A stretch of 64,000 nucleotides of DNA from Hyalangium minutum (GCF_000737315.1 NZ_JMCB01000008.1:124001-188000); one strand, 5' to 3'; positions 46,799 through 60,619 are shown, counted from the stretch's first letter. Notes: generated from the letters alone by a model not told the origin. A program made the numbers and translations.

Positions 46799-48370
46799 AT
46801 GAACTTCTCCTCTGTCGGAAAGATTCTCGGTGCGCTCGGGCTCCTGCTGCTGCTGTCGAGCCCGTTCACCCTGTTCTTCACCTCGGGCTCCGTGGCGCTC
46901 ACGGCGGCCAAGGCTGTGTCGGGCCTCGTGCTGCTGGGCATCTACTTCGCCACCAACTTCCAGCAGTTCGGCCAGTTCGCCACGCGGCGCTCCAGCTTCT
47001 TCTTCGCCACCTCCATGCTGATGGGAGTGGTGACACTGGGCGGGCTGGGCGCGCTCAACTACATCGCGTTCAAGAAGAACAAGAGCTGGGACCTGACGAA
47101 GCAGAAGGTCTTCACCCTGGCGCCGCAGACGACCACCACGCTCACCGGGCTCAAGGAGAAGGTGCGCGCCATCGGCTTCATGCCTCCCAGCCACCAGTAC
47201 TACGACATGGTGGAGCAGCTCTTCCGGCGCTACCAGGCTGCGGCCCCCGACAAGTTCGAGTACTCCTTCAAGGATCCCGCGCGTCACCCGGATCTGGCGG
47301 CCAAGTACCAGCTCAAAGAGGGCCAGACCACGGTGGTGCTCGTGCGCGGCGAGGGCGACAAGGAGTCGCACACCACCCTCAACATGCTCTCCGAGCAGGA
47401 CCTCACCAACGCCCTCATCAAGATCAACTCGGTGGGCTCGCAGAAGGTGTACTTCCTCACCGGCCACGGCGAGTGGCCACTGGAGGCCGAGGCCGCCGCG
47501 CCGGGCGATCCCGGTGGAGCGCTCTCGGAGTTCCGCAAGCACCTGCTCCAGGAGGGCTACACCGCCGAGGAGCTGAACCTGGCAGGGCAGAAGGAGGTCC
47601 CCCGGGACGCGTCGCTGGTGATCATTCCCGGCGCGAAGACGCCCTACACGGCGCCGGAGGCGGAGGCGCTGCGCCAGTACCTCGCGCAGGGTGGGCGGAT
47701 GCTCTACTTCGCGGACTTCAACGCCGAGCCGAAGCTGGACGCGCTCCTGGCCGAGTACGGCGTCGAGGTGGACAAGGGCATCGCCGCGGACCCGCAGTTC
47801 AACAGCGGCAACCCCTATGCACTGGTCTCCGCCTTCTACAGCGAGCACGAGCTGACCCGGCCCCTGCGCCAGCTCAAGCTCAACATCGAGTTCCCCACGG
47901 CGCGCAGCCTCACGGTGCTGCGCCAGGGCATGGCCGAGGGCGTCAAGGCCGAGCCCGTGGTGCTCTCCTCCCCCTTCGCGTGGGTGGAGACGACGCCGGC
48001 CGCGGACGCCACCCCCTCGGATGGCGAGAAGTCCGGCCAGCTCGTCCTGGTGGCCGCCGCCACGCGGGACACGAAGAACGCCCCGGACAAGCGCTTCGAT
48101 GAGGCGCGCGTGGTGGTGATGGGTGACTCGGAGATCCTCCTGGACGCCAACTGGGGCCACGAGGCCAACCGCAACCTCGTGCTGAATGCGCTCGGCTGGG
48201 CGTCGAACCAGGTCGAGAAGATCACCATCCGCCCGCCGGACCGCGACGTGTCCACATTGCAGATGGATCCGGACATGCTGGAGAACATCCGCTTCGTGTC
48301 CACGGACCTGCTGCCCCTGACCCTCATGGGCATGGGGCTGGCCATCTGGCTGTCGAGGCGAAACAAGTGA
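46799..48370 (+). CDS. GldG-like ABC auxiliary component
   Basis: TM helices, WDLTKQKVFTL, VYFLTGHGE, LRQYLAQGGRM, VVMGDSE, C-terminal TM. Confidence 0.88.
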   Translation: MNFSSVGKILGALGLLLLLSSPFTLFFTSGSVALTAAKAVSGLVLLGIYFATNFQQFGQFATRRSSFFFATSMLMGVVTLGGLGALNYIAFKKNKSWDLTKQKVFTLAPQTTTTLTGLKEKVRAIGFMPPSHQYYDMVEQLFRRYQAAAPDKFEYSFKDPARHPDLAAKYQLKEGQTTVVLVRGEGDKESHTTLNMLSEQDLTNALIKINSVGSQKVYFLTGHGEWPLEAEAAAPGDPGGALSEFRKHLLQEGYTAEELNLAGQKEVPRDASLVIIPGAKTPYTAPEAEALRQYLAQGGRMLYFADFNAEPKLDALLAEYGVEVDKGIAADPQFNSGNPYALVSAFYSEHELTRPLRQLKLNIEFPTARSLTVLRQGMAEGVKAEPVVLSSPFAWVETTPAADATPSDGEKSGQLVLVAAATRDTKNAPDKRFDEARVVVMGDSEILLDANWGHEANRNLVLNALGWASNQVEKITIRPPDRDVSTLQMDPDMLENIRFVSTDLLPLTLMGMGLAIWLSRRNK

Positions 48371-49911
48371 AGCAGACCCAAAAGAACCTCGTCACCCTGG
48401 TGCTGGCCACCGCCGCCGCTGCGGGCCTGGGCCTCTACGCGTACTTCGGAGTGAAGGAGCCGGAGCGGAAGGAGGCCGTGCGCAAGGAACAAGCCGAGAA
48501 GCTCTTCGCTCCCGAGACTCCCGGCGAGAAGCCCACTCAGGGCGCCACCGCTCCTGCGGCCGTCTTCACGCAGCTCACCGTCCAGTCCAAGGGCATCACC
48601 GCGACGCTGGAGCGCCAAGGCACCACGTGGTTCCTCACCGCTCCGGTGAAGGGCAAGGCGGACAAGCCCACCGTGGAGGGCATCCTCGCCCAGCTGCACG
48701 CCGGTAAGTTCAAGGCCACCGTCGAGGAGGCTCCCACCGACGAGGACCTCAAGAAGTACGGCCTCCTGCCTCCCGTGTTCTCGGTGGCGGCGAAGGCCTA
48801 TGTCCCGGACGCCTCAGGCGGTGGTCAGGACGATCCCGCGCGCCAGCGCACGGTGACGCTGCTCGGCGGCATCGAGAACACCTTCGATGGCTCCCTGTAC
48901 GTGCGCCGCGATGGCGACCCACGCGTGTACTCCGCGGATGGCTCCGTGCGCTACGCACTGGAGAAGGATCTGTACGCGCTGCGTGACAAGGAGTTCCTGG
49001 GGTTCGAAGAGGCCTCGCTGAAGGCGATCGAGGTGAAGACCCCAGCGACCAGCTACTCGCTGGAGCGGGAGGCGGATAAGTCCTGGCGGTTGACGAAGCC
49101 CCTGACGGTGCGCGCGGACGGAGAGCGCGTGAAGAAGGCCCTTCTGGCCCTCAAGGAGCAGCGTGCGCTCTCCTTCCCCATGGACTCCGCCGCGGAGCGC
49201 TCGAAGCTGGGCCTGGACAAGCCCGTGGTGGAGGCACGCTTCACGCTCGACCCGGGCGATCCCGTGCGGCTGCGGTTCTCCCTGGTCCCCGAAGGCTCCG
49301 GAGCGAAGGTGTATGCGCTGCGCGAGCAGGGCTCGGAGGCGACGCTCGCTGAGGTCCCCGAAGGCGCGCTCACCGTGCTGAACCTGAGCCTCCCAGAACT
49401 GCGGACCAAGACCGTGCTGAGCTTCAAGCGCGAGGACGTGAAGCGCATCGTCTTCTACCCGGGCGCTGGGGCACCGCCGGCGGTTCTGTCCAACAAGAAC
49501 CCGGCCGCGAACGCGCTGCAGGGCTGGGAGCTGGAGGAGCCCATCACGGGCAAGGTCGAGGGGCTCAAGGTGGCCTCGCTGCTCAGCCTCCTGAGCAGCG
49601 TCAAGGCCTCCAGCTTCGGCGAAGCCAACCCGAAGTGGGAGCAGTACGGCATCACCGACAACGCTCGCAGCTTCTCGCTGCAGGACACGAGCGGCAAGGA
49701 GCTGGCACGGCTGTGGCTTGGCGGCGCGGTGCCGAACAAGGAAGGATCTGTCTACGCCCGGGGATCCAACCCCGAAGTGGCCGAGGTGGAGGCAGCGTGG
49801 CTGGCCCACCTCCCCGAGCGCGCCGAGGACTTCTTGCAGGCCTCCGCCACCGCTGGAACGGACGGTGGCACCCCCGACACGGACGGTGGAGTTCCTGAGG
49901 ACTCGCCCTGA
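48367..49911 (+). CDS. DUF4340-repeat periplasmic protein
   Basis: N-terminal TM; repeated LER....W.LT.P....AD, L..YGL..P units; 4-bp overlap with the GldG-like gene. Confidence 0.82.
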   Translation: MKQTQKNLVTLVLATAAAAGLGLYAYFGVKEPERKEAVRKEQAEKLFAPETPGEKPTQGATAPAAVFTQLTVQSKGITATLERQGTTWFLTAPVKGKADKPTVEGILAQLHAGKFKATVEEAPTDEDLKKYGLLPPVFSVAAKAYVPDASGGGQDDPARQRTVTLLGGIENTFDGSLYVRRDGDPRVYSADGSVRYALEKDLYALRDKEFLGFEEASLKAIEVKTPATSYSLEREADKSWRLTKPLTVRADGERVKKALLALKEQRALSFPMDSAAERSKLGLDKPVVEARFTLDPGDPVRLRFSLVPEGSGAKVYALREQGSEATLAEVPEGALTVLNLSLPELRTKTVLSFKREDVKRIVFYPGAGAPPAVLSNKNPAANALQGWELEEPITGKVEGLKVASLLSLLSSVKASSFGEANPKWEQYGITDNARSFSLQDTSGKELARLWLGGAVPNKEGSVYARGSNPEVAEVEAAWLAHLPERAEDFLQASATAGTDGGTPDTDGGVPEDSP

Positions 49912-51203: not shown

Positions 51204-52014
51204 GCTCTCCTCCGTCCTTTCGCTCGTGTTCGTCCCACTGCCGCCCGTCGCGGAATCCCCAGTGGTGGATGTCCACGTGGTAGTTCACCCGCGAGATCAG
51301 GTTGCCCCGGCAGATGCGCTCCTCCCAGTTGCCATCGCGCACCGTGTCCAGCGTGCGCGCCATCAGCTCCGCCATCACCCAGTCCGGGATGGTGTCGCGC
51401 TCGGACGGGTAGGCGTACCGGAACATCATCAGGTGGCTGAACAGCACCTCCCAGTACCGGTCGAAGCGGCGCATGAGCCGCTCCCAGTCCATCTTCCGCC
51501 CGGCCTTGAGGATGAGGTGGTTCACGTCCGATCCGTCATAGCGCTCGCGCTCGTTGACGAAGGCCTTGGACCAGATCATCTCCTCGGCGGGCGCCACCAG
51601 GCAGCGGTGGCCGAACACCGTGGAGGTAGGGGCGTGCTCGAACCACTCGTCGTCCACCACCGCCACCCCGTTGCCGGAGCTGAAGATGAAGTCGACGAAG
51701 TACTCGCCCTTGAAGGCCTTGTAGAGCCACACCTCGTCCGTGCGTTCGGTGCGCCAGCCGTCCAGTTCCAGCACCTCGAGCGCCCGGCCCGCATCGCGTT
51801 TGCGAGGGAAGAGGTCCAGGTCCTTCGTGTCGCGGTAGATGCCCGTGTACGTGGCGTAGGCGTAGGCTCCGCCAACGACGAACGGCACGCCCGCATCCAG
51901 GAGCAGCCCGACAGCCCTGGCCCTGGCGTTGATCTCGTCCGGGGCCCTGTCGCGCTCCGCCAGCATGGCATCCACACCCAGCTCTCCGGGGTGGTTCGGG
52001 TGTCTCTTTTCCAT
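51157..52014 (-). CDS. Pol-beta superfamily nucleotidyltransferase
   Basis: ATG 52014; VVGGAYA...TKDLDLF...VDFIF; overlaps the phosphoesterase start by 47 bp. Confidence 0.88.
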   Translation of the reverse strand: MEKRHPNHPGELGVDAMLAERDRAPDEINARARAVGLLLDAGVPFVVGGAYAYATYTGIYRDTKDLDLFPRKRDAGRALEVLELDGWRTERTDEVWLYKAFKGEYFVDFIFSSGNGVAVVDDEWFEHAPTSTVFGHRCLVAPAEEMIWSKAFVNERERYDGSDVNHLILKAGRKMDWERLMRRFDRYWEVLFSHLMMFRYAYPSERDTIPDWVMAELMARTLDTVRDGNWEERICRGNLISRVNYHVDIHHWGFRDGRQWDEHERKDGGERGTRSQLEDSVGSSR

Positions 52015-52029
52015 AGGGCATAAGCTAGG

Positions 52030-52049
52030 GACGGGGAAATTTCCCCGTC
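52030..52049. promoter_or_regulatory. Perfect 20-bp palindrome in the divergent intergenic region
   Basis: GACGGGGAAATTTCCCCGTC equals its own reverse complement. Confidence 0.6.
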
Positions 52050-52234
52050 GTACCAGACGGCGCGGAAGCCCGGTGAGCAGCCGAGCAGCCTCCAACTCAT
52101 CGGTTTTGCTGGGGATTTCCTCCCAGAAAATCGGCCAGAAAAGGCCGCTTTCTGTTTTTCGAGGGGGCTGTGTCCATGGGGACGCAAACACGCTGCACGG
52201 CCCCGCCGAGGGCCTCACTCGAAAGGAAGACCCC

Positions 52235-53230
52235 ATGTTCCGCAAGACCCTGATGCTGTGCGCCTCGCTCGCGATTGTCGGTTGTGGCAACACCCAGGAG
52301 GACGAGTTCCGCGACGGCCTGCCCTCCAAGGAGATGGTGACCGTGAAGGAGCCGGGCACCAGCGCGGGCCAGAAGCTCGAGGCCGAGGGCGGCGCGGTGT
52401 TCGCGTTCGACAAGGGCCAGACGAGCGACTTCTACAAGCTGACCCGCGGCGCCACAGTGAGCGTGAACCTCGGCACCGCGTTCGTACTCAACCTCATCGA
52501 GGAGGTGACGAAGCACACGCCCACCAGCATCGAGGGCGACGTCGCGGTGTGGGGCCCGTACACGGACGCGCTGAGCCCCAACACCTTCAAGGTCACCGTC
52601 ACCAAGACGGCCGAGAACGCCTACAGCTACAAGGTCGAGGGCAAGGCGAAGACGGCGGCGGACACGGAGTTCAAGACGATCATCTCCGGCTCGCACACCA
52701 TTGCCACGGACGAGCTGGGCAACCGCCTGCGCAACTACGGCTCCGGCAACATCCAGCTGGACTGGGACGCGGCGCAGACGCTCCCCGAGCACGGCGATGA
52801 GCTGGGTACCGCCGCCATCCGCTACTCGAGGCCGGACGCCAAGGCACAGGCCACGGTGGAGGCCGACTTCCGCAACGTCGAGGATGACGAGCGGCCCGGC
52901 ACCCGCGTGAACGCCGACTACCGCTACAAGGAGACGCCGGGCGCTGGTGGCGAGTTCGAGTTCGGCCTGGACAAGAACTTCGACACGGAGCCGGCCCGCT
53001 CGAAGATCGAGCACCTGACCATCAAGAGCCGCTGGGCTCAGACGGGCGCCGGCCGGGCGGACGTGAAGATCTCCGGCGGCGACTACCTGATCGCCTCGGC
53101 CACGGCCAGCGAGTGCTGGGACGCCAACTTCGCCAGCCAGTTCCTGATTGCGAGCTGGGTGACCGCGCCCGTGTACGGGGACGTGTCCGCCTGCGGCAGC
53201 TTCTCGGTGGCGCTCTACTCTTCTCTGTAA
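52235..53230 (+). CDS. Lipoprotein of unknown function (paralog A)
   Basis: AAGGA RBS, ATG 52235, lipobox IVGC; beta-rich; ECWD motif. Confidence 0.88.
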   Translation: MFRKTLMLCASLAIVGCGNTQEDEFRDGLPSKEMVTVKEPGTSAGQKLEAEGGAVFAFDKGQTSDFYKLTRGATVSVNLGTAFVLNLIEEVTKHTPTSIEGDVAVWGPYTDALSPNTFKVTVTKTAENAYSYKVEGKAKTAADTEFKTIISGSHTIATDELGNRLRNYGSGNIQLDWDAAQTLPEHGDELGTAAIRYSRPDAKAQATVEADFRNVEDDERPGTRVNADYRYKETPGAGGEFEFGLDKNFDTEPARSKIEHLTIKSRWAQTGAGRADVKISGGDYLIASATASECWDANFASQFLIASWVTAPVYGDVSACGSFSVALYSSL

Positions 53231-53254
53231 TCCGCGCATTAGACTGCGCGCGCC

Positions 53255-53794
53255 ATGGGAACGAGCCAGCCGGTCCTGAGAGTCATCCAGGGTGGTCCTA
53301 CCGAGGACCGGCGGGCGTTTCTCCAAGAGCTGTACACGAAGTATGGCGGCAGCGTCCTCGGGCGCTGCCGCTACCTGTTGAAGGACGCATCGAAGGCCGA
53401 GGACGCGATGCACGACGTGTTCGCCCGCGCCCTCACTCACTCGGACGGGTTCCGCTCCGAGGCCTCGCCGCTGACATGGTTGATGAAGATCGCCACGAAC
53501 CACTGCCTGAACCAGATCCGATCGGAGCGTGCGGGCTGGCGCAGCTGGTTCCAGCGGGAAGAGGCGGCGAAGCCAGAGGGGCACGGGGGCCCCCAGAGCA
53601 TGGAGACGCGGGACCTGGTGCGGAGGTTGCTGTCGCGGGTGGATGTGGAGACGCAGGCAGCGGTCATCCACTACCACGTGGACGGGATGACGCTGGAGGA
53701 AGTGGCCGCGGCGTTGGGGCGCTCAGTGCCCACGGTGCGCAAGCGGCTGGAGAGTTTCGCCGAGCTGGGCGGAGAAGAGTTGAGGGTCCGATGA
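53255..53794 (+). CDS. ECF sigma-70 factor
   Basis: Region 2 AEDAMHDVF...WLMKIATNHCLN; region 4 GMTLEEVAAALGRSVPTVRKRL. Confidence 0.93.
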   Translation: MGTSQPVLRVIQGGPTEDRRAFLQELYTKYGGSVLGRCRYLLKDASKAEDAMHDVFARALTHSDGFRSEASPLTWLMKIATNHCLNQIRSERAGWRSWFQREEAAKPEGHGGPQSMETRDLVRRLLSRVDVETQAAVIHYHVDGMTLEEVAAALGRSVPTVRKRLESFAELGGEELRVR

Positions 53795-54576
53795 GCGCGC
53801 ACCTTTCAGAGCACCCCTCCGAGTGGACGCTGCGCCGCCTGCACGCTGGCGAGCTGCCAACCCCAGAGGCAACCCGGGCCCGAACCCACGCCGCCGAGTG
53901 CGAGCAGTGCGGCGCCGTGCTCCGCGCGGCCGAGGAGGCCCAGCGCCAGTTCGAAGCCGCCACCCCCTTCGAGCGCTTCGAGGAGGGAGTGAAGCGGGCG
54001 GAGGAGAAGTCCCGGAAGGAGGAGTTGGCCCGCCGGGGCTCGGCTCAGCGGTGGATGGGGCCGGTGGTGGCCCTGGCAGCCACGGTGCTGCTGGTGGTGG
54101 CGGTGCGGCCCCTGCTGGCGACGAGCACGGGGTCCGGGGTGCGGACGAAGGGCGGCGCGGTGGCGGAGCTGCGCATCGGTGGCGGCGAGGGCACGCAGCG
54201 GATGGCTCGGACGAACACTCCCGAGCCGCTGGCCCCGGGCGAGCGCGTGCGGATTGGCTACACGCCAGACACGCGCCGGTACGTGCTGGCGCTGTCGATT
54301 GACTCGGCCGGTGAGGTGACGCCGCTCTACCCCGAGACGGGCGAGAGCCTGCCAGTGAAGCCGGGAGCGGGCACGCACTGGCTGCCGGACAGCATCGAGT
54401 TCACCGGCTCGGGCGCCGAGCGCGTGGTGGTGCTGCTAAGCGACGCTCCGGTGAAGGTGGAAGATGCCACCGCGGCGGCGCGCGAGGCCTTCGAGGCGGT
54501 GGGGAGGGACGTGGCGAAGCTGCCTCCACTGAGCGTGGACGGCGACCAGACGCACTGGATGCTGCTCAAGCCATGA
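53791..54576 (+). CDS. Zinc-binding transmembrane anti-sigma factor with periplasmic DUF4384-like domain
   Basis: HAAECEQC (HxxxCxxC), TM helix, RTKG, LAPGERVRIGY...SIDSAGEVTPLYP; ATGA overlap with the sigma gene. Confidence 0.85.
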   Translation: MSAHLSEHPSEWTLRRLHAGELPTPEATRARTHAAECEQCGAVLRAAEEAQRQFEAATPFERFEEGVKRAEEKSRKEELARRGSAQRWMGPVVALAATVLLVVAVRPLLATSTGSGVRTKGGAVAELRIGGGEGTQRMARTNTPEPLAPGERVRIGYTPDTRRYVLALSIDSAGEVTPLYPETGESLPVKPGAGTHWLPDSIEFTGSGAERVVVLLSDAPVKVEDATAAAREAFEAVGRDVAKLPPLSVDGDQTHWMLLKP

Positions 54577-56177
54577 GGTGCTCGAGGCGACAGCTGGGCG
54601 CCCTTACCCTGGGGTTGCTGCTGGCCACCGCCGCGCAGGCGGAGCCGCTGCGCCGCTTTGCCCTCATCATCGGCAATGACGAGGGCGGCTCGGACACCCG
54701 GCCCCTGAGCTACGCCCGAGAGGACGCGCGCAAGATGCACGGGCTCCTGTCGCGGCTGGGCGGAGTCTCCCCCTCGGACTCGCGGCTGCTGTTGAACGAC
54801 GACGCCCAGGACGTGCTCTCCGCGCTGGCGAACCTGGAGGCCCGCATCCAGGCAGCCCGGACCCGGGGCGAGCGCACCGCGCTGCTCGTCTACTACTCGG
54901 GCCACGCGAAGGACGGCGCGCTGCGGCTGGGAGACACACGGCTGCCCTTCGACACGTTCAAGAAGCGGCTGGCGGACGCTCCGGCGGACATCCGCATCGC
55001 CATCCTGGACTCGTGCCGCTCGGGCGCACTGACGCGGACCAAGGGTGCCCGGCGCGCGCCCGCCTTCGAGATCGACTCCGGGGCTACGCGGGACGCACGG
55101 GGCCTGGTGATCCTCACCTCCAGCTCAGCGGACGAGGACTCGCAGGAGTCAGATGTGATCGGCGGCAGCTACTTCTCCCACCACCTGACGAGCGGGCTCC
55201 TGGGAGATGCGGATCGCTCTGGCGACGGGCAGGTGACGCTCTTCGAGGCGTACTCGCACGCGTACGATCGGACGGTGGCGGACACGGCGGGCAGCAGCGC
55301 GGGGCCGCAGCACCCCACGTTCAGCTACGACCTCGCGGGCAACGGGGACCTGGTGCTCACGAACCTGCGCACCTCCGAGGGGCTGGTGGTGCCTCGCTCG
55401 GCGCCAGGAGGGGCCTATTACTTCGTGAATCCGAGCGGACTGGTGGTGGCGGAGCTGGAGAAGGCGCCAGAGACAGAGCGGCGGGTGGCGCTCGCGCCGG
55501 GCACGTACCGGGTGAAGCGCCGCCTGGAGGATCGGCTGCGCATCGGCGAGGTGGAGGTCCGTCGCGGACAGGAGACCGTGCTGGAGGAGTTCCGGTTTCG
55601 CGATGCGCCCTTCTCGGACGATCCGGTGAAGGGAGGCCGCGGACGGGGCTCCTTCTGGACCGTGGGGCTGACGGGCGGCTACCACTCCTTCTTCGATCGG
55701 GACATCCGCGAGTCCCTGTTCCTCTCCGTGCCCCTGGTGGGCGGCGAGGTGAACCTCCACAACTACTTCCGCGAGGACTGGGTGTGGGGCTTCGACGTGG
55801 CGCTGGGAGGCCGCGCCGCGAAGCTGAGCCTGGAGAACCTGTCGGGCGCGAGCTACCGCTACTCGGTGCTCAACCTGGGCACCTCCCTGACCGCCGAGTG
55901 GCACGTGGGAGACCTGGCTCCCTTCGCGGGCGCGCGGCTCGCGTACCTTTATATGGGCCGCAAGTTCGACGGCGGGGTGTTCCCGGATCAGTTCTACGCG
56001 ACGTTCTCTCCCGGACTGGTGGCGGGCCTGCGCTATCGGCTGCTGCGCAGTCTGCACCTCACCGGGCGCGGCCGGCTGCACTACCTCACCTATAACGTCC
56101 ACGAAGAAGGCACCGAGAACAGCAACAGCTCCCTGGGCTACTGGGAGCTGTCGGCCCTGGTGACCTATGAGCTCTAA
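54573..56177 (+). CDS. Exported caspase-family (C14) protease with C-terminal beta-barrel-like domain
   Basis: Signal peptide ending AAQA; RRFALIIGN, YYSGHA, ILDSCRSG, SSSADEDSQES...SYFSHHL..GL; LAPGTYRV; amphipathic strands at the C-terminus. Confidence 0.88.
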   Translation: MRCSRRQLGALTLGLLLATAAQAEPLRRFALIIGNDEGGSDTRPLSYAREDARKMHGLLSRLGGVSPSDSRLLLNDDAQDVLSALANLEARIQAARTRGERTALLVYYSGHAKDGALRLGDTRLPFDTFKKRLADAPADIRIAILDSCRSGALTRTKGARRAPAFEIDSGATRDARGLVILTSSSADEDSQESDVIGGSYFSHHLTSGLLGDADRSGDGQVTLFEAYSHAYDRTVADTAGSSAGPQHPTFSYDLAGNGDLVLTNLRTSEGLVVPRSAPGGAYYFVNPSGLVVAELEKAPETERRVALAPGTYRVKRRLEDRLRIGEVEVRRGQETVLEEFRFRDAPFSDDPVKGGRGRGSFWTVGLTGGYHSFFDRDIRESLFLSVPLVGGEVNLHNYFREDWVWGFDVALGGRAAKLSLENLSGASYRYSVLNLGTSLTAEWHVGDLAPFAGARLAYLYMGRKFDGGVFPDQFYATFSPGLVAGLRYRLLRSLHLTGRGRLHYLTYNVHEEGTENSNSSLGYWELSALVTYEL

Positions 56178-56187
56178 GGAGCGCGCG

Positions 56188-57144
56188 ATGCGAAACCTCT
56201 GGCCCGCACTCCTCTGTCTCCTGGCCGCGTGCGGCGGCAACTTCTCCAACGAGGACCTCGAGTATCTCAACGCCCTGCCCTCGCGCGAAGCGCTCGCCAG
56301 CAAGCTGCCCGAGAGCAGCGCGAGCACGATCGGCGGAGGCCTGGCGCAGCGCCGGGATCAGCTCGCGCTGGGAGACGTCTCCCAGCTCTACGTGGACACA
56401 CGGAAGGCCTCCACGGACTTCAACGCCTCGGTGGATGGGCTGCTGAGCCTGCTGGAGAACATCCGCACCGTGCCACCCACCACGCGCGAGCCAGACCGGC
56501 GTACCTGGGGCCCGTGGAGGGACGACGCCCATCCAGGCAACGACGTGCGCTTCGTGATGGATCGCGCGGGAGATTTCTTCGAGTACCACCTCGACTACAA
56601 GCCCTCATCGGCCTCCGCTGAGGACGCCTGGTGGACCTTCCTGGAGGGCTCTTTCAAGGCGGACGCGGGCATCCGCGTGGGCGAGGGCAAGTTGCACCTG
56701 CTCATCGATGTCGCGCTGGCCCATGGCCTCAACGTGGGCGAGCTGCGGACCCTCAAGCGGCTGGACATCGACTACCAGAACAAAGCGCTCCCCACGCTCG
56801 TGGAGATGAGCTTCACCTCGCAGCCTGTGCCGCCCCTGAGCTCCCAGCAGGTTCGCTACACCTACCGCGAGCTGACCGGTGGCCTGGGGGAGATGCGCTT
56901 CCTGCTGAAGGAAACGGACGCCGTGCCGGGCAATCTGCTCGAGGACGTGGAGATCACCAGTCGTTGGACGTCAAACAGTGGCGGTGTGGCCACCTTCGTC
57001 ATCCTTCGCGGGGACCTCATGGGCGCCAGCTACAAAGAATGCTGGGACGCCCAGAACCACATCACCTTCGCCAAGAGGAGCTGGGAGTTCTTCGGGATTG
57101 GCAAAGCCAGCGATTGTCCGAACCTTTCAGCCTTTGACAATTGA
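56188..57144 (+). CDS. Lipoprotein of unknown function (paralog B)
   Basis: AAGGAG RBS, lipobox LAAC; aligns by eye with 52235..53230. Confidence 0.88.
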   Translation: MRNLWPALLCLLAACGGNFSNEDLEYLNALPSREALASKLPESSASTIGGGLAQRRDQLALGDVSQLYVDTRKASTDFNASVDGLLSLLENIRTVPPTTREPDRRTWGPWRDDAHPGNDVRFVMDRAGDFFEYHLDYKPSSASAEDAWWTFLEGSFKADAGIRVGEGKLHLLIDVALAHGLNVGELRTLKRLDIDYQNKALPTLVEMSFTSQPVPPLSSQQVRYTYRELTGGLGEMRFLLKETDAVPGNLLEDVEITSRWTSNSGGVATFVILRGDLMGASYKECWDAQNHITFAKRSWEFFGIGKASDCPNLSAFDN

Positions 57145-57289: not shown

Positions 57290-57739
57290 ATGAAGGCGAA
57301 TCGTCTTTTCATCGCGTGTGTGGCGGCCCTCTCTCTCGTGGCGTGCGGTGGCGGCACCGAGCTGACCGCAGTGCTGTCGGGCGCGGCGGAGAAGCCCAGC
57401 GCGGTGACCACCACCGGCAGCGGCAGCACGGACGTCACGGTGGACGGCAAGAAGATCGAGGTGACTGGCAGCTTCAAGGACCTCAGCGGCAACGCCACGG
57501 CGGCCCACATCCACGGCCCGGCCGATGCGAGCAGCACCGCGGGCGTCTTCTGCAACCTGACCGTGCCGGCCGCCGCCAGCGGCTCCATCACCACGGACAA
57601 GAACGCCGGTTCTTGCGGGGCCATTGAGCTGACCGAAGCCCAGGTGGCCGACTTCGAGGCCGGCAAGTACTACATCAACATCCACACCGCCGCGAACGCG
57701 AACGGCGAGATCCGCGGCCAGCTGATCAAGAAGGAGTAG
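57290..57739 (+). CDS. CHRD-domain lipoprotein
   Basis: GGAGG RBS, lipobox LVAC, LSGAAE, AAHIHG, YINIHT....GEIRGQL. Confidence 0.9.
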   Translation: MKANRLFIACVAALSLVACGGGTELTAVLSGAAEKPSAVTTTGSGSTDVTVDGKKIEVTGSFKDLSGNATAAHIHGPADASSTAGVFCNLTVPAAASGSITTDKNAGSCGAIELTEAQVADFEAGKYYINIHTAANANGEIRGQLIKKE

Positions 57740-57879: not shown

Positions 57880-58170
57880 ATGGCCCGTATCACCGTCGAA
57901 GACTGCCTCCCCCTCGTCGACAACCGCTTCGCCCTGGTGCTGCTCGGCGCCAAGCGCGCCCGCCAGCTCATGGCCGGCGCCCGCCCCATCATCGAGATCT
58001 CCAAGAACAAGCCCCCCGTGCTCTCCCTCCGGGAGGTGGCCACTGGCCGCGTGAAGTTCGACCGCGACGTGCGCGAGGCGCTGTCCGGCAAGTACTCCGC
58101 GGACGAGGCCAAGGCCGCTGCCGCTCCGGCCGCTCCTCCGGCCGCGCCGACGCTGCCCCCCTCTGTCTGA
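57880..58170 (+). CDS. rpoZ: RNA polymerase omega subunit
   Basis: [10 protein letters not shown]...[16 protein letters not shown]. Confidence 0.95.
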
Positions 58171-60328: not shown

Positions 60329-60619
60329 ATGAAGATTCGCCCCCTGCAGGACCGCCTCATCATCAAGCGCGTGGCTGAGGAGAACAAGACCAAGGGAGGT
60401 CTGTTCATCCCCGATACGGCCAAGGAGAAGCCGCTCGAGGGTAAGGTAGTTGCTGTCGGCAACGGCAAGGTGCTCGAGGACGGCAAGATCCGCCCGATGG
60501 ACATCAAGGCCGGCGACACCATCCTCTTCAGCAAGTACGCGGGCACCGAGATCAAGATCGACGGTGAGGATCACCTCATCCTCCGTGAGGAGGACGTGCT
60601 GGGTGTGATCGAGAAGTAA
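60329..60619 (+). CDS. groES: Co-chaperonin GroES
   Basis: [31 protein letters not shown]. Confidence 0.98.

Follow-up and report, generated by a model that had tools for sequence, protein, structure and literature searches.

In a 64,000-nt window of the Hyalangium minutum genome (GCF_000737315.1 NZ_JMCB01000008.1:124001-188000; positions are counted from the start of the window), five co-oriented genes at 52235 to 57144, all on the plus strand, encode a lipoprotein (LipoA), a sigma factor of the extracytoplasmic function (ECF) type, an anti-sigma factor, a caspase homolog of peptidase family C14, and a second lipoprotein (LipoB). The five-gene arrangement recurs far beyond chance, and, judged by its sequence conservation, the cassette is a conserved functional unit. 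We tentatively read it, at somewhat less than an even chance, as an autoregulated trans-envelope ECF module in which the protease would serve as the dedicated site-1 protease of the anti-sigma factor.

The order is lipoA (52235 to 53230; 331 aa), the sigma factor gene (53255 to 53794; 179 aa), the anti-sigma gene (53791 to 54576; 261 aa), the protease gene (54573 to 56177; 534 aa), and lipoB (56188 to 57144; 318 aa). Reading of the sequence upheld the layout given in a preliminary description of this DNA, namely five co-oriented genes joined in turn by a 24-nt gap, two ATGA overlaps, and a 10-nt gap that reads TAA GGAGCGCGCG ATG. The GC content at third codon positions is 0.86 to 0.95 across the five called frames, indicating that these are the coding frames; long antisense open reading frames were rejected as artefacts of high-GC DNA (65 to 72% GC). 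A scan of the cassette for sigma-70 promoters and terminators found no convincing internal element.

A scan for relatives of the protease, restricted to one genome per species, returned 241 loci, of which the best 80, all from Myxococcota, were examined; the best 120 of 1547 caspase homologs were also inspected. The full five-gene order, whose conservation in Myxococcota the preliminary description had left to be checked, is present in 67 of the 80 loci and extends to distant relatives. Another 10 loci end at contig edges exactly where the missing cassette genes would be, and three lack only lipoA (L043 to L045, comprising two Cystobacter fuscus copies and one from Archangium minus). The sigma, anti-sigma and lipoB genes were never missing from those of the 80 loci with enough sequence, and the ATGA overlap between the sigma and anti-sigma genes is retained in 71 of 74. 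The flanking genes (upstream, those for a nucleotidyltransferase and a metallophosphatase; downstream, rpoZ) are common only to Myxococcaceae and Archangiaceae. Most of the more distant metagenome-assembled genomes (protease 57 to 61% identical) lack them; a few (L053 and L069) keep the upstream pair. Since the cassette is intact where its outer flanks differ, it is conserved as a unit and not merely as residual synteny.

Farther metagenomic relatives were found through the periplasmic domain of the anti-sigma factor (protease 40 to 55% and anti-sigma 31 to 36% identity; GC 58 to 69%). Four of these distant loci (L082, L086, L089 and L090) again carry genes for an ECF sigma factor, an anti-sigma factor, a C14 protease of 525 to 550 aa, and LipoB, with lipoA also present in L086 and L089 and absent from L090. 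The anti-sigma and caspase genes stay adjacent, often overlapping, even in the loci without lipoA (L043 to L045 and L090). Myxococcus xanthus has an ortholog. Cystobacter fuscus Cbf 10 has two cassettes on one chromosome (L043 and L044), both without lipoA, and several distinct Archangium violaceum protease paralogs occur among the caspase homologs; the paired cassettes in Archangiaceae genomes and the protease paralogs indicate that the cassette duplicates within genomes.

The sigma factor is a group IV sigma-70 protein without extensions, matching Pfam Sigma70_r2 (aa 26 to 92, E 3e-14), Sigma70_r4_2 (aa 120 to 165, E 1e-8), and NCBIfam TIGR02937 (70.7 bits; cut-off 42.9). No other cassette protein is as well conserved: its identity is 59 to 68% in distant loci where that of the anti-sigma factor is only 31 to 35%. 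The anti-sigma factor carries the zinc motif H33-x3-C37-x2-C40 together with H8, conserved in orthologs and spaced as in ChrR, and its hydropathy maximum marks a single hydrophobic helix at about aa 92 to 110. These domains, the zinc motif, the transmembrane helix and the ATGA overlap bear out the earlier identification of the two proteins as an ECF sigma factor and its anti-sigma factor.

Some family assignments of the anti-sigma factor become clear only in an alignment (A4) of 58 members, made up of 57 distant anti-sigma relatives (24 to 43% identity) and the window protein. The zf-HC2 model, for which the window protein does not reach E 0.01, is matched by 17 of the 58. Similarly, the ectodomain of the window protein scores 21.8 bits against DUF4384 (PF14326), under the cut-off of 27 (E 2e-4), and 32 of the 58 members match that family, with a best E of 1.8e-16; by sequence, the ectodomain very likely belongs to DUF4384. 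Queried with the ectodomain, a set of 1.84 billion representative proteins yielded 491 relatives, nearly all of 250 to 290 aa with the domain at the C terminus. The top matches all had the anti-sigma architecture, and Pfam detected no fusion of C14 to DUF4384 among the 57 distant ectodomain relatives. A sequence search of the anti-sigma factor against the PDB gave spurious coiled-coil matches only.

Several further features of this family were recorded. The distant anti-sigma factor of L086 (1367 to 2170) has an N-R-S-K-G motif and a full cassette and has lost the H-x3-C-x2-C ligands, indicating that zinc binding is not essential to the family. The extreme C terminus (...LLKP, 54571 to 54573) ends in a conserved Lys-Pro, with K260 at least 90% conserved at 24 to 43% identity, and may be a tag by which a partner or a tail-specific protease recognizes the protein. 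One member of A4, possibly the 515-aa P0409, also matches Sigma70_r2; it may join a sigma and an anti-sigma factor in one protein, or two genes may have been called as one. Some anti-sigma orthologs are mislabelled 'ACP synthase'.

The protease matches PF00656 (Peptidase_C14) with 51.9 bits against a cut-off of 21.4 (E 1e-13). Its catalytic dyad, the intact SGH and DSC motifs of the preliminary description, consists of His111 (54903 to 54905) and Cys148 (55014 to 55016), together spanning 54903 to 55016; both residues are invariant in 87 homologs and are also kept in the distant loci L082, L086, L089 and L090. An AlphaFold2 model built with the 87 homologs (mean predicted local distance difference test score [pLDDT] 81) places a caspase domain at about aa 26 to 245 behind a signal peptide that ends AQA|EP, followed by a beta-sandwich (aa 261 to 345) and an eight-strand barrel (aa 361 to 533, pLDDT mostly above 90). 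Foldseek searches of the PDB matched the N-terminal domain to pro-caspase, Yca1, Candida glabrata MCA1 and AtMC9 (E 1e-5 to 1e-4) and the barrel to OmpA, NspA, Ail and OmpX (E 2.5e-9 to 1e-6). The linker before the barrel contains an invariant PFSDDPVKG, and the protein ends in an aromatic/hydrophobic beta-signal, Y-E-L in the window and Y-[DE]-F in relatives. In a profile search the protease weakly matched fungal metacaspase-1, with Asp51 aligned to the Asp of the C-I-N-D-A motif; in metacaspases this Asp lines the acidic S1 pocket.

An eight-stranded barrel has both of its ends on the periplasmic side, which should leave the protease domain suspended from the outer membrane's inner face. The modelled protein is thus best described as anchored in the outer membrane by an OmpA/OmpX-like barrel, with a catalytic domain that should be periplasmic. 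The preliminary description had called it an exported caspase; the signal peptide and the C14 domain stand, while a protease free in the periplasm does not agree with the predicted barrel. The idea that the middle beta-sandwich (aa 258 to 350) is a second DUF4384 domain was rejected (hhalign probability 0.8%). PADLOC defence models gave only marginal generic matches to the cassette proteins (caspase, E 8.6e-4; mad1, E 4.5e-3). UniRef names caspase and anti-sigma orthologs 'ActD', 'ActD, putative' or 'ActD-like' (P0021, P0159 and P0369; Stigmatella aurantiaca, Myxococcus fulvus HW-1). The same name belongs to a gene of the act operon in M. xanthus, an operon that sets when the C-signal is produced.

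Two short motifs suggest a connection between the protease and the anti-sigma factor. In the anti-sigma factor, N/V-R-x-K-G-G-A is near-invariant in orthologs (VRTKGGA in the window, aa 117 to 123); its core, R118-T-K120-G-G (54142 to 54156), is a candidate site-1 cleavage site. The R-x-K-G lies about 8 residues past the transmembrane helix, after a linker variable in length and composition, and directly before the ectodomain, and K120 is among only seven positions at least 90% conserved in A4. In the protease, the segment right after the catalytic Cys (aa 150 to 175; 55020 to 55097) has a pLDDT below 50, as expected of a disordered loop, and contains the motif T-R-[TSR]-K-G-[AV]-R-[RK]-A-P-A-F (T-R-T-K-G-A-R-R-A-P-A-F in the window), near-invariant across the 80 loci. 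The loop and the anti-sigma motif thus share an R-x-K-G core, and the barrel linker has an invariant P-V-K-G. We take the loop to be the probable counterpart of the intersubunit linker at which caspases and metacaspases autoprocess. Prokaryotic caspase homologs cleave after Arg or Lys (PMC6426788, PMC3501461), and the simplest reading of the shared core is that R-x-K|G would be the preferred site of an Arg/Lys-specific enzyme, one that the anti-sigma factor also offers. Cleavage of the anti-sigma factor at this point would yield a short stump of the kind required by site-2 proteases. The residue at 'x' co-varied inconsistently between the two motifs across loci.

The Lys of the anti-sigma motif is missing in 3 of the 57 distant relatives (P0463, P0417 and P0462). 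Two of these, P0463 and P0417, are the only orphans found, that is, anti-sigma factors without a caspase neighbour. P0463 (L084, 2037 to 2786) keeps its N-terminal region and lies directly after a DUF4340 gene, with no adjacent sigma or caspase gene; P0417 (L088) lies behind a lipoA remnant and has lost the sigma gene, its own sigma-binding N terminus, and the caspase. Loss of the Lys in the orphans is suggestive of a link between caspase and anti-sigma factor. The window has an ortholog of the DUF4340 gene at 48367 to 49911, 2.3 kb upstream of the cassette, and the orphan of L084 may have been left over from a locus that was rearranged.

Upstream of lipoA is a conserved promoter-like element, TTTCTGTTTT-N-GTGTC, at 52149 to 52174 on the plus strand, 61 nt 5' of the ATG, with the consensus TTTCTGTTTT-nnGnnnnnGC-nGTGTCCAT. 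Of 66 loci, 63 have its core, TTTC-N17-GTGTC, ahead of lipoA, 58 of them with a spacer of 17 nt, and the other three show one-mismatch versions. In the three loci without lipoA the motif sits upstream of the ECF gene, and the distant loci L089 and L090 have near-matches at the corresponding position. Other TTTC/GTGTC matches number only 19 in 926 kb on both strands; the only other match to TTTC-N15-18-GTGTC in the window (31221), considered as a further regulon member, lies inside a long open reading frame and is probably due to chance. In its spacing, and in a downstream half that contains GTC, the element resembles ECF promoters. Conservation of this motif 5' of the first gene suggests one operon starting at lipoA and probably autoregulated. 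The autoregulation proposed in the preliminary description is therefore plausible, given a conserved ECF-style bipartite motif upstream of the first gene.

The lipoproteins at the two ends of the cassette have lipoboxes (LAIVG|C in LipoA and LLAA|C in LipoB), and they are paralogs, duplicates of one gene (29% identity over full length, E 2e-23). Both conserve an ECWD...C cysteine pair, which fits a periplasmic disulfide. Neither has a Pfam or NCBIfam match, and a sequence search of LipoA against the PDB was also empty. The AlphaFold2 model of LipoA (pLDDT 89, predicted template modelling score 0.84) shows a long helix (aa 65 to 92) packed on about 14 strands, for which Foldseek found no match in the PDB (best E 0.15, TM 0.2). 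In M. xanthus lipoproteins, Lys at position +2 is an inner-membrane retention signal. Neither lipoprotein carries it, making an outer membrane location likely for both on sequence grounds. lipoB has an AAGGAG ribosome-binding site 7 nt upstream, and wherever a locus is long enough to tell, L082, L086, L089 and L090 included, it lies downstream of the caspase gene.

Taken as a signalling pathway, these components could work as follows. The zinc-type single-pass anti-sigma factor would hold the sigma factor at the inner membrane, with its DUF4384 domain in the periplasm, while the OmpA-like barrel would anchor the metacaspase-like Cys protease in the outer membrane with its catalytic domain in the periplasm. 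An unspecified envelope signal would activate the protease, and the paralogous lipoproteins would probably take part as sensors, adaptors or inhibitors. As part of its activation the protease may cut itself, in its R-x-K-G loop and at P-V-K-G before the barrel. Once active, it would make the site-1 cut in the anti-sigma factor, behind the basic residues of the R-x-K-G-G that lies next to the membrane, general site-2 and cytoplasmic proteases would remove the stump, and the freed sigma factor would transcribe the operon from TTTC-N17-GTGTC, plus any other targets. A more specific version, in which the protease activates itself at the R-x-K-G loop, leaves its barrel at P-V-K-G, and cuts the anti-sigma factor under the control of lipoproteins that act as sensors through a fold not seen before, seems to us rather unlikely in its entirety.

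The link between caspase and anti-sigma factor is favoured by their co-inheritance to the limit of detection, by the matching R-x-K-G motifs, and by loss of the Lys in two orphans; the tight or overlapping junctions, the invariant dyad, and the topology of an outer membrane barrel with a periplasmic protease also count for site-1 cleavage by the caspase. The same holds for the Arg/Lys preference of prokaryotic caspase homologs and the alignment of Asp51, for the recurrence of DUF4384 beside caspase-fold proteases and ECF-binding proteins (bioRxiv 10.1101/2022.08.17.504292), for the conserved promoter-like motif, and for the precedent of DdvA (PMC11506125). Several observations weigh against it. 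The main difficulty is reach, since an enzyme tethered to the outer membrane would have to act at a point only about 8 residues away from the inner membrane. A cut by which the protease frees itself at P-V-K-G, or an altered envelope geometry, would remove the difficulty and could even be the regulated step, although this is speculation. The orphans amount to two cases only. P0462 (NRTMGA) belongs to a complete cassette and yet has Met where others have Lys, which is thus no absolute requirement. The R-x-K-G abuts a folded domain and could be structural. That the caspase contacts and cuts the anti-sigma factor is something we infer, plausibly, from these features, and we likewise infer from position and conservation that the cassette sigma factor is the one that would recognize TTTC-N17-GTGTC; the -35 half of that motif (TTTC/TGTTTT) differs from the usual GGAAC of ECF promoters, and NCBIfam gave only generic matches to the sigma factor, with no numbered ECF group.

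Co-transcription fits the protease equally well as an output of the sigma factor. The anti-sigma factor would then be under ordinary control, through general site-1 proteases or a ligand of DUF4384, and the caspase and lipoproteins would be the main regulon, an inducible protease system for envelope remodelling, protein quality control, or predation and development. Many ECF operons carry effector genes, and the promoter-like motif occurs in the examined DNA essentially only before the cassette, which may thus be its own main target. The distance imposed by the outer membrane anchor and the cassette that tolerates loss of the Lys also speak for this account. Against it, the anti-sigma and caspase genes remain strictly adjacent even where lipoA is gone, both caspase-less orphans lost the conserved Lys (in L088 along with the sigma gene and the sigma-binding N terminus; L084 keeps its N-terminal region), and DUF4384 recurs with caspase-fold proteases elsewhere (bioRxiv 10.1101/2022.08.17.504292). 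We consider it doubtful, if clearly possible.

A relay that involves no cleavage of the anti-sigma factor is improbable. Here the outer membrane protein and the anti-sigma ectodomain would form a trans-periplasmic complex, like FecA-FecR in topology, in which DUF4384 binds the caspase, perhaps as its inhibitor; dissociation driven by a signal would alter the stability of the anti-sigma factor and the activity of the protease on other proteins, such as the lipoproteins. The layout of FecA-FecR-FecI is indeed the same, with an outer membrane barrel bearing an N-terminal periplasmic domain, an inner-membrane anti-sigma factor, and an ECF sigma factor. The R-x-K-G could serve as a pseudosubstrate, and the frequent fusion of DUF4384 to proteases (bioRxiv 10.1101/2022.08.17.504292, our only source for these fusions) is what a regulatory or docking domain would show. 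The cassette differs from FecA-FecR-FecI in that a small eight-stranded barrel takes the place of a TonB-dependent transporter and carries a protease as its periplasmic domain. Against the relay, Pfam found no FecR or TonB-dependent transducer domain in the cassette proteins, and the invariant dyad argues that catalysis matters. The cassette is neither of the cell-surface-signalling type nor a PADLOC defence system.

It is very improbable that the metacaspase is an autolytic executioner of developmental programmed cell death under sigma control, a role proposed on the finding that four of five M. xanthus metacaspases lie in sigma-factor operons (PMC3501461), given that the enzyme is predicted to be periplasmic and anchored in the outer membrane, away from cytoplasmic targets, that the cassette is kept in many uncultured Myxococcota whose way of life is not known, and that its proteins match no defence or abortive-infection model.

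The caspase-triggered ECF circuit of the preliminary description has more precedent than was assumed, as sigma-metacaspase operons have been reported (PMC3501461) and a caspase-fold trigger of ECF release has been proposed (PMC11506125). Asplund-Samuelsson et al. (2012) reported the M. xanthus operons mentioned above and further sigma-metacaspase operons in Anaeromyxobacter, Haliangium, Sorangium, Ralstonia and Fibrobacter (PMC3501461). The bare gene association is the same as here. ECF54 genes neighbour genes for CHAT, subtilase and carboxypeptidase proteins and are described without an anti-sigma factor (PMC8999054), whereas the cassette has one. Neither report describes an outer membrane barrel, a DUF4384 anti-sigma factor, paralogous lipoproteins, the motifs or a mechanism, and the 2012 study reads its operons in terms of programmed cell death. 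Our literature search likewise found no description of the cassette's barrel, DUF4384 anti-sigma factor, duplicated lipoproteins or motifs.

The closest precedent for caspase-fold control of an ECF anti-sigma factor comes from the same bacterial group. In M. xanthus, the zinc anti-sigma factor DdvA carries a fused periplasmic TPR-CHAT region and is proposed to cut itself before RseP acts (PMC11506125). DdvS/DdvA (PMC11506125, PMC6061681) shares with the cassette an ECF sigma factor and a single-pass zinc anti-sigma factor, and in both proposals a caspase-fold His-Cys module in the periplasm would make the first cut, followed by intramembrane proteolysis. However, in DdvA the CHAT domain and TPRs are fused to the anti-sigma factor, which is dimeric and proposed to cut itself in trans, whereas the cassette has a separate C14 protein predicted to be anchored in the outer membrane. 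The cassette anti-sigma factor also has only a small ectodomain, very likely DUF4384, two lipoproteins belong to the unit, and no defence island follows. Lacking TPR-CHAT, the cassette is not of the DdvA type; at most it works like DdvA.

Another relative of this logic is found in type III-E CRISPR systems, where the CHAT protease Csx29 cuts Csx30, which together with Csx31 holds the ECF sigma factor RpoE; some Csx30 C-terminal domains are DUF4384, a family also found fused to proteases (bioRxiv 10.1101/2022.08.17.504292). As proposed for the cassette, a protease of the caspase fold makes its cut in a flexible linker of a protein that sequesters a sigma factor, and DUF4384 is very likely shared with the cassette anti-sigma factor. 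Craspase, as this system is called, is cytoplasmic, RNA-activated, of the CHAT type and linked to CRISPR, whereas the cassette is predicted to be envelope-located, is of the C14 type, and has no CRISPR genes.

In the sigma-E/RseA/DegS/RseP system of Escherichia coli, a dedicated envelope-sensing protease cuts a single-pass anti-sigma factor in the periplasm, a site-2 cut follows, and the operon is autoregulated. DegS is an inner-membrane serine protease with a PDZ domain, whereas the candidate in the cassette is a clan CD Cys protease, predicted in the outer membrane and encoded inside the operon; in place of an RseB-like protein there are two lipoproteins of unmatched fold. By analogy, the cassette may be a split, trans-envelope version of a recurring theme, the control of an ECF sigma factor by a caspase-fold protein.

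Bacterial caspase homologs are abundant, and for hardly any of them is a substrate or a physiological role known. The cassette offers a testable pair of protease and substrate with a built-in transcriptional read-out, in genetically tractable organisms. If the site-1 role is correct, a clan CD Cys protease would join the short list of ECF site-1 proteases, as the first from the caspase family; fused (DdvA), cytoplasmic (craspase) and split trans-envelope forms would represent one logic, and DUF4384 would gain a function. If the protease is only an output, the cassette would be an ordinary ECF operon with an unusual outer membrane protease. The lipoproteins, with a confidently predicted fold that has no solved relative, are of structural interest in their own right.

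Some minor observations concern the surrounding DNA. A gene for a CHRD-domain lipoprotein (57290 to 57739) begins 145 nt past lipoB, with no obvious terminator between; it is present only in the closest relatives (L001 to L007) and thus lies outside the conserved cassette. Farther downstream in the window are rpoZ (57880 to 58170) and groES (60329 to 60619). On the upstream side, a second conserved element, TAGG[GA]A[CT]G...TT...C[CG]GTC (52026 to 52049), contains the palindrome GGGGAAATTTCCCC at 52033 to 52046 and lies between the cassette promoter and the start of the divergent nucleotidyltransferase gene (conserved TTTTCCAT; ATG at 52014, minus strand). This element is common to Myxococcaceae and Archangiaceae loci and resembles GGAAC-N13-CGTC, for which its spacer is short; it could be a promoter or operator of the divergent gene. 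Finally, the 5' leader of the cassette contains a GC-rich hairpin, GGCCC-N6-GGGCC (52199 to 52214), between the promoter-like motif and the ribosome-binding site. Its fold is not significant alone (z -1.5), and many Myxococcaceae loci, though not the distant ones, have hairpins at this position that differ in sequence.

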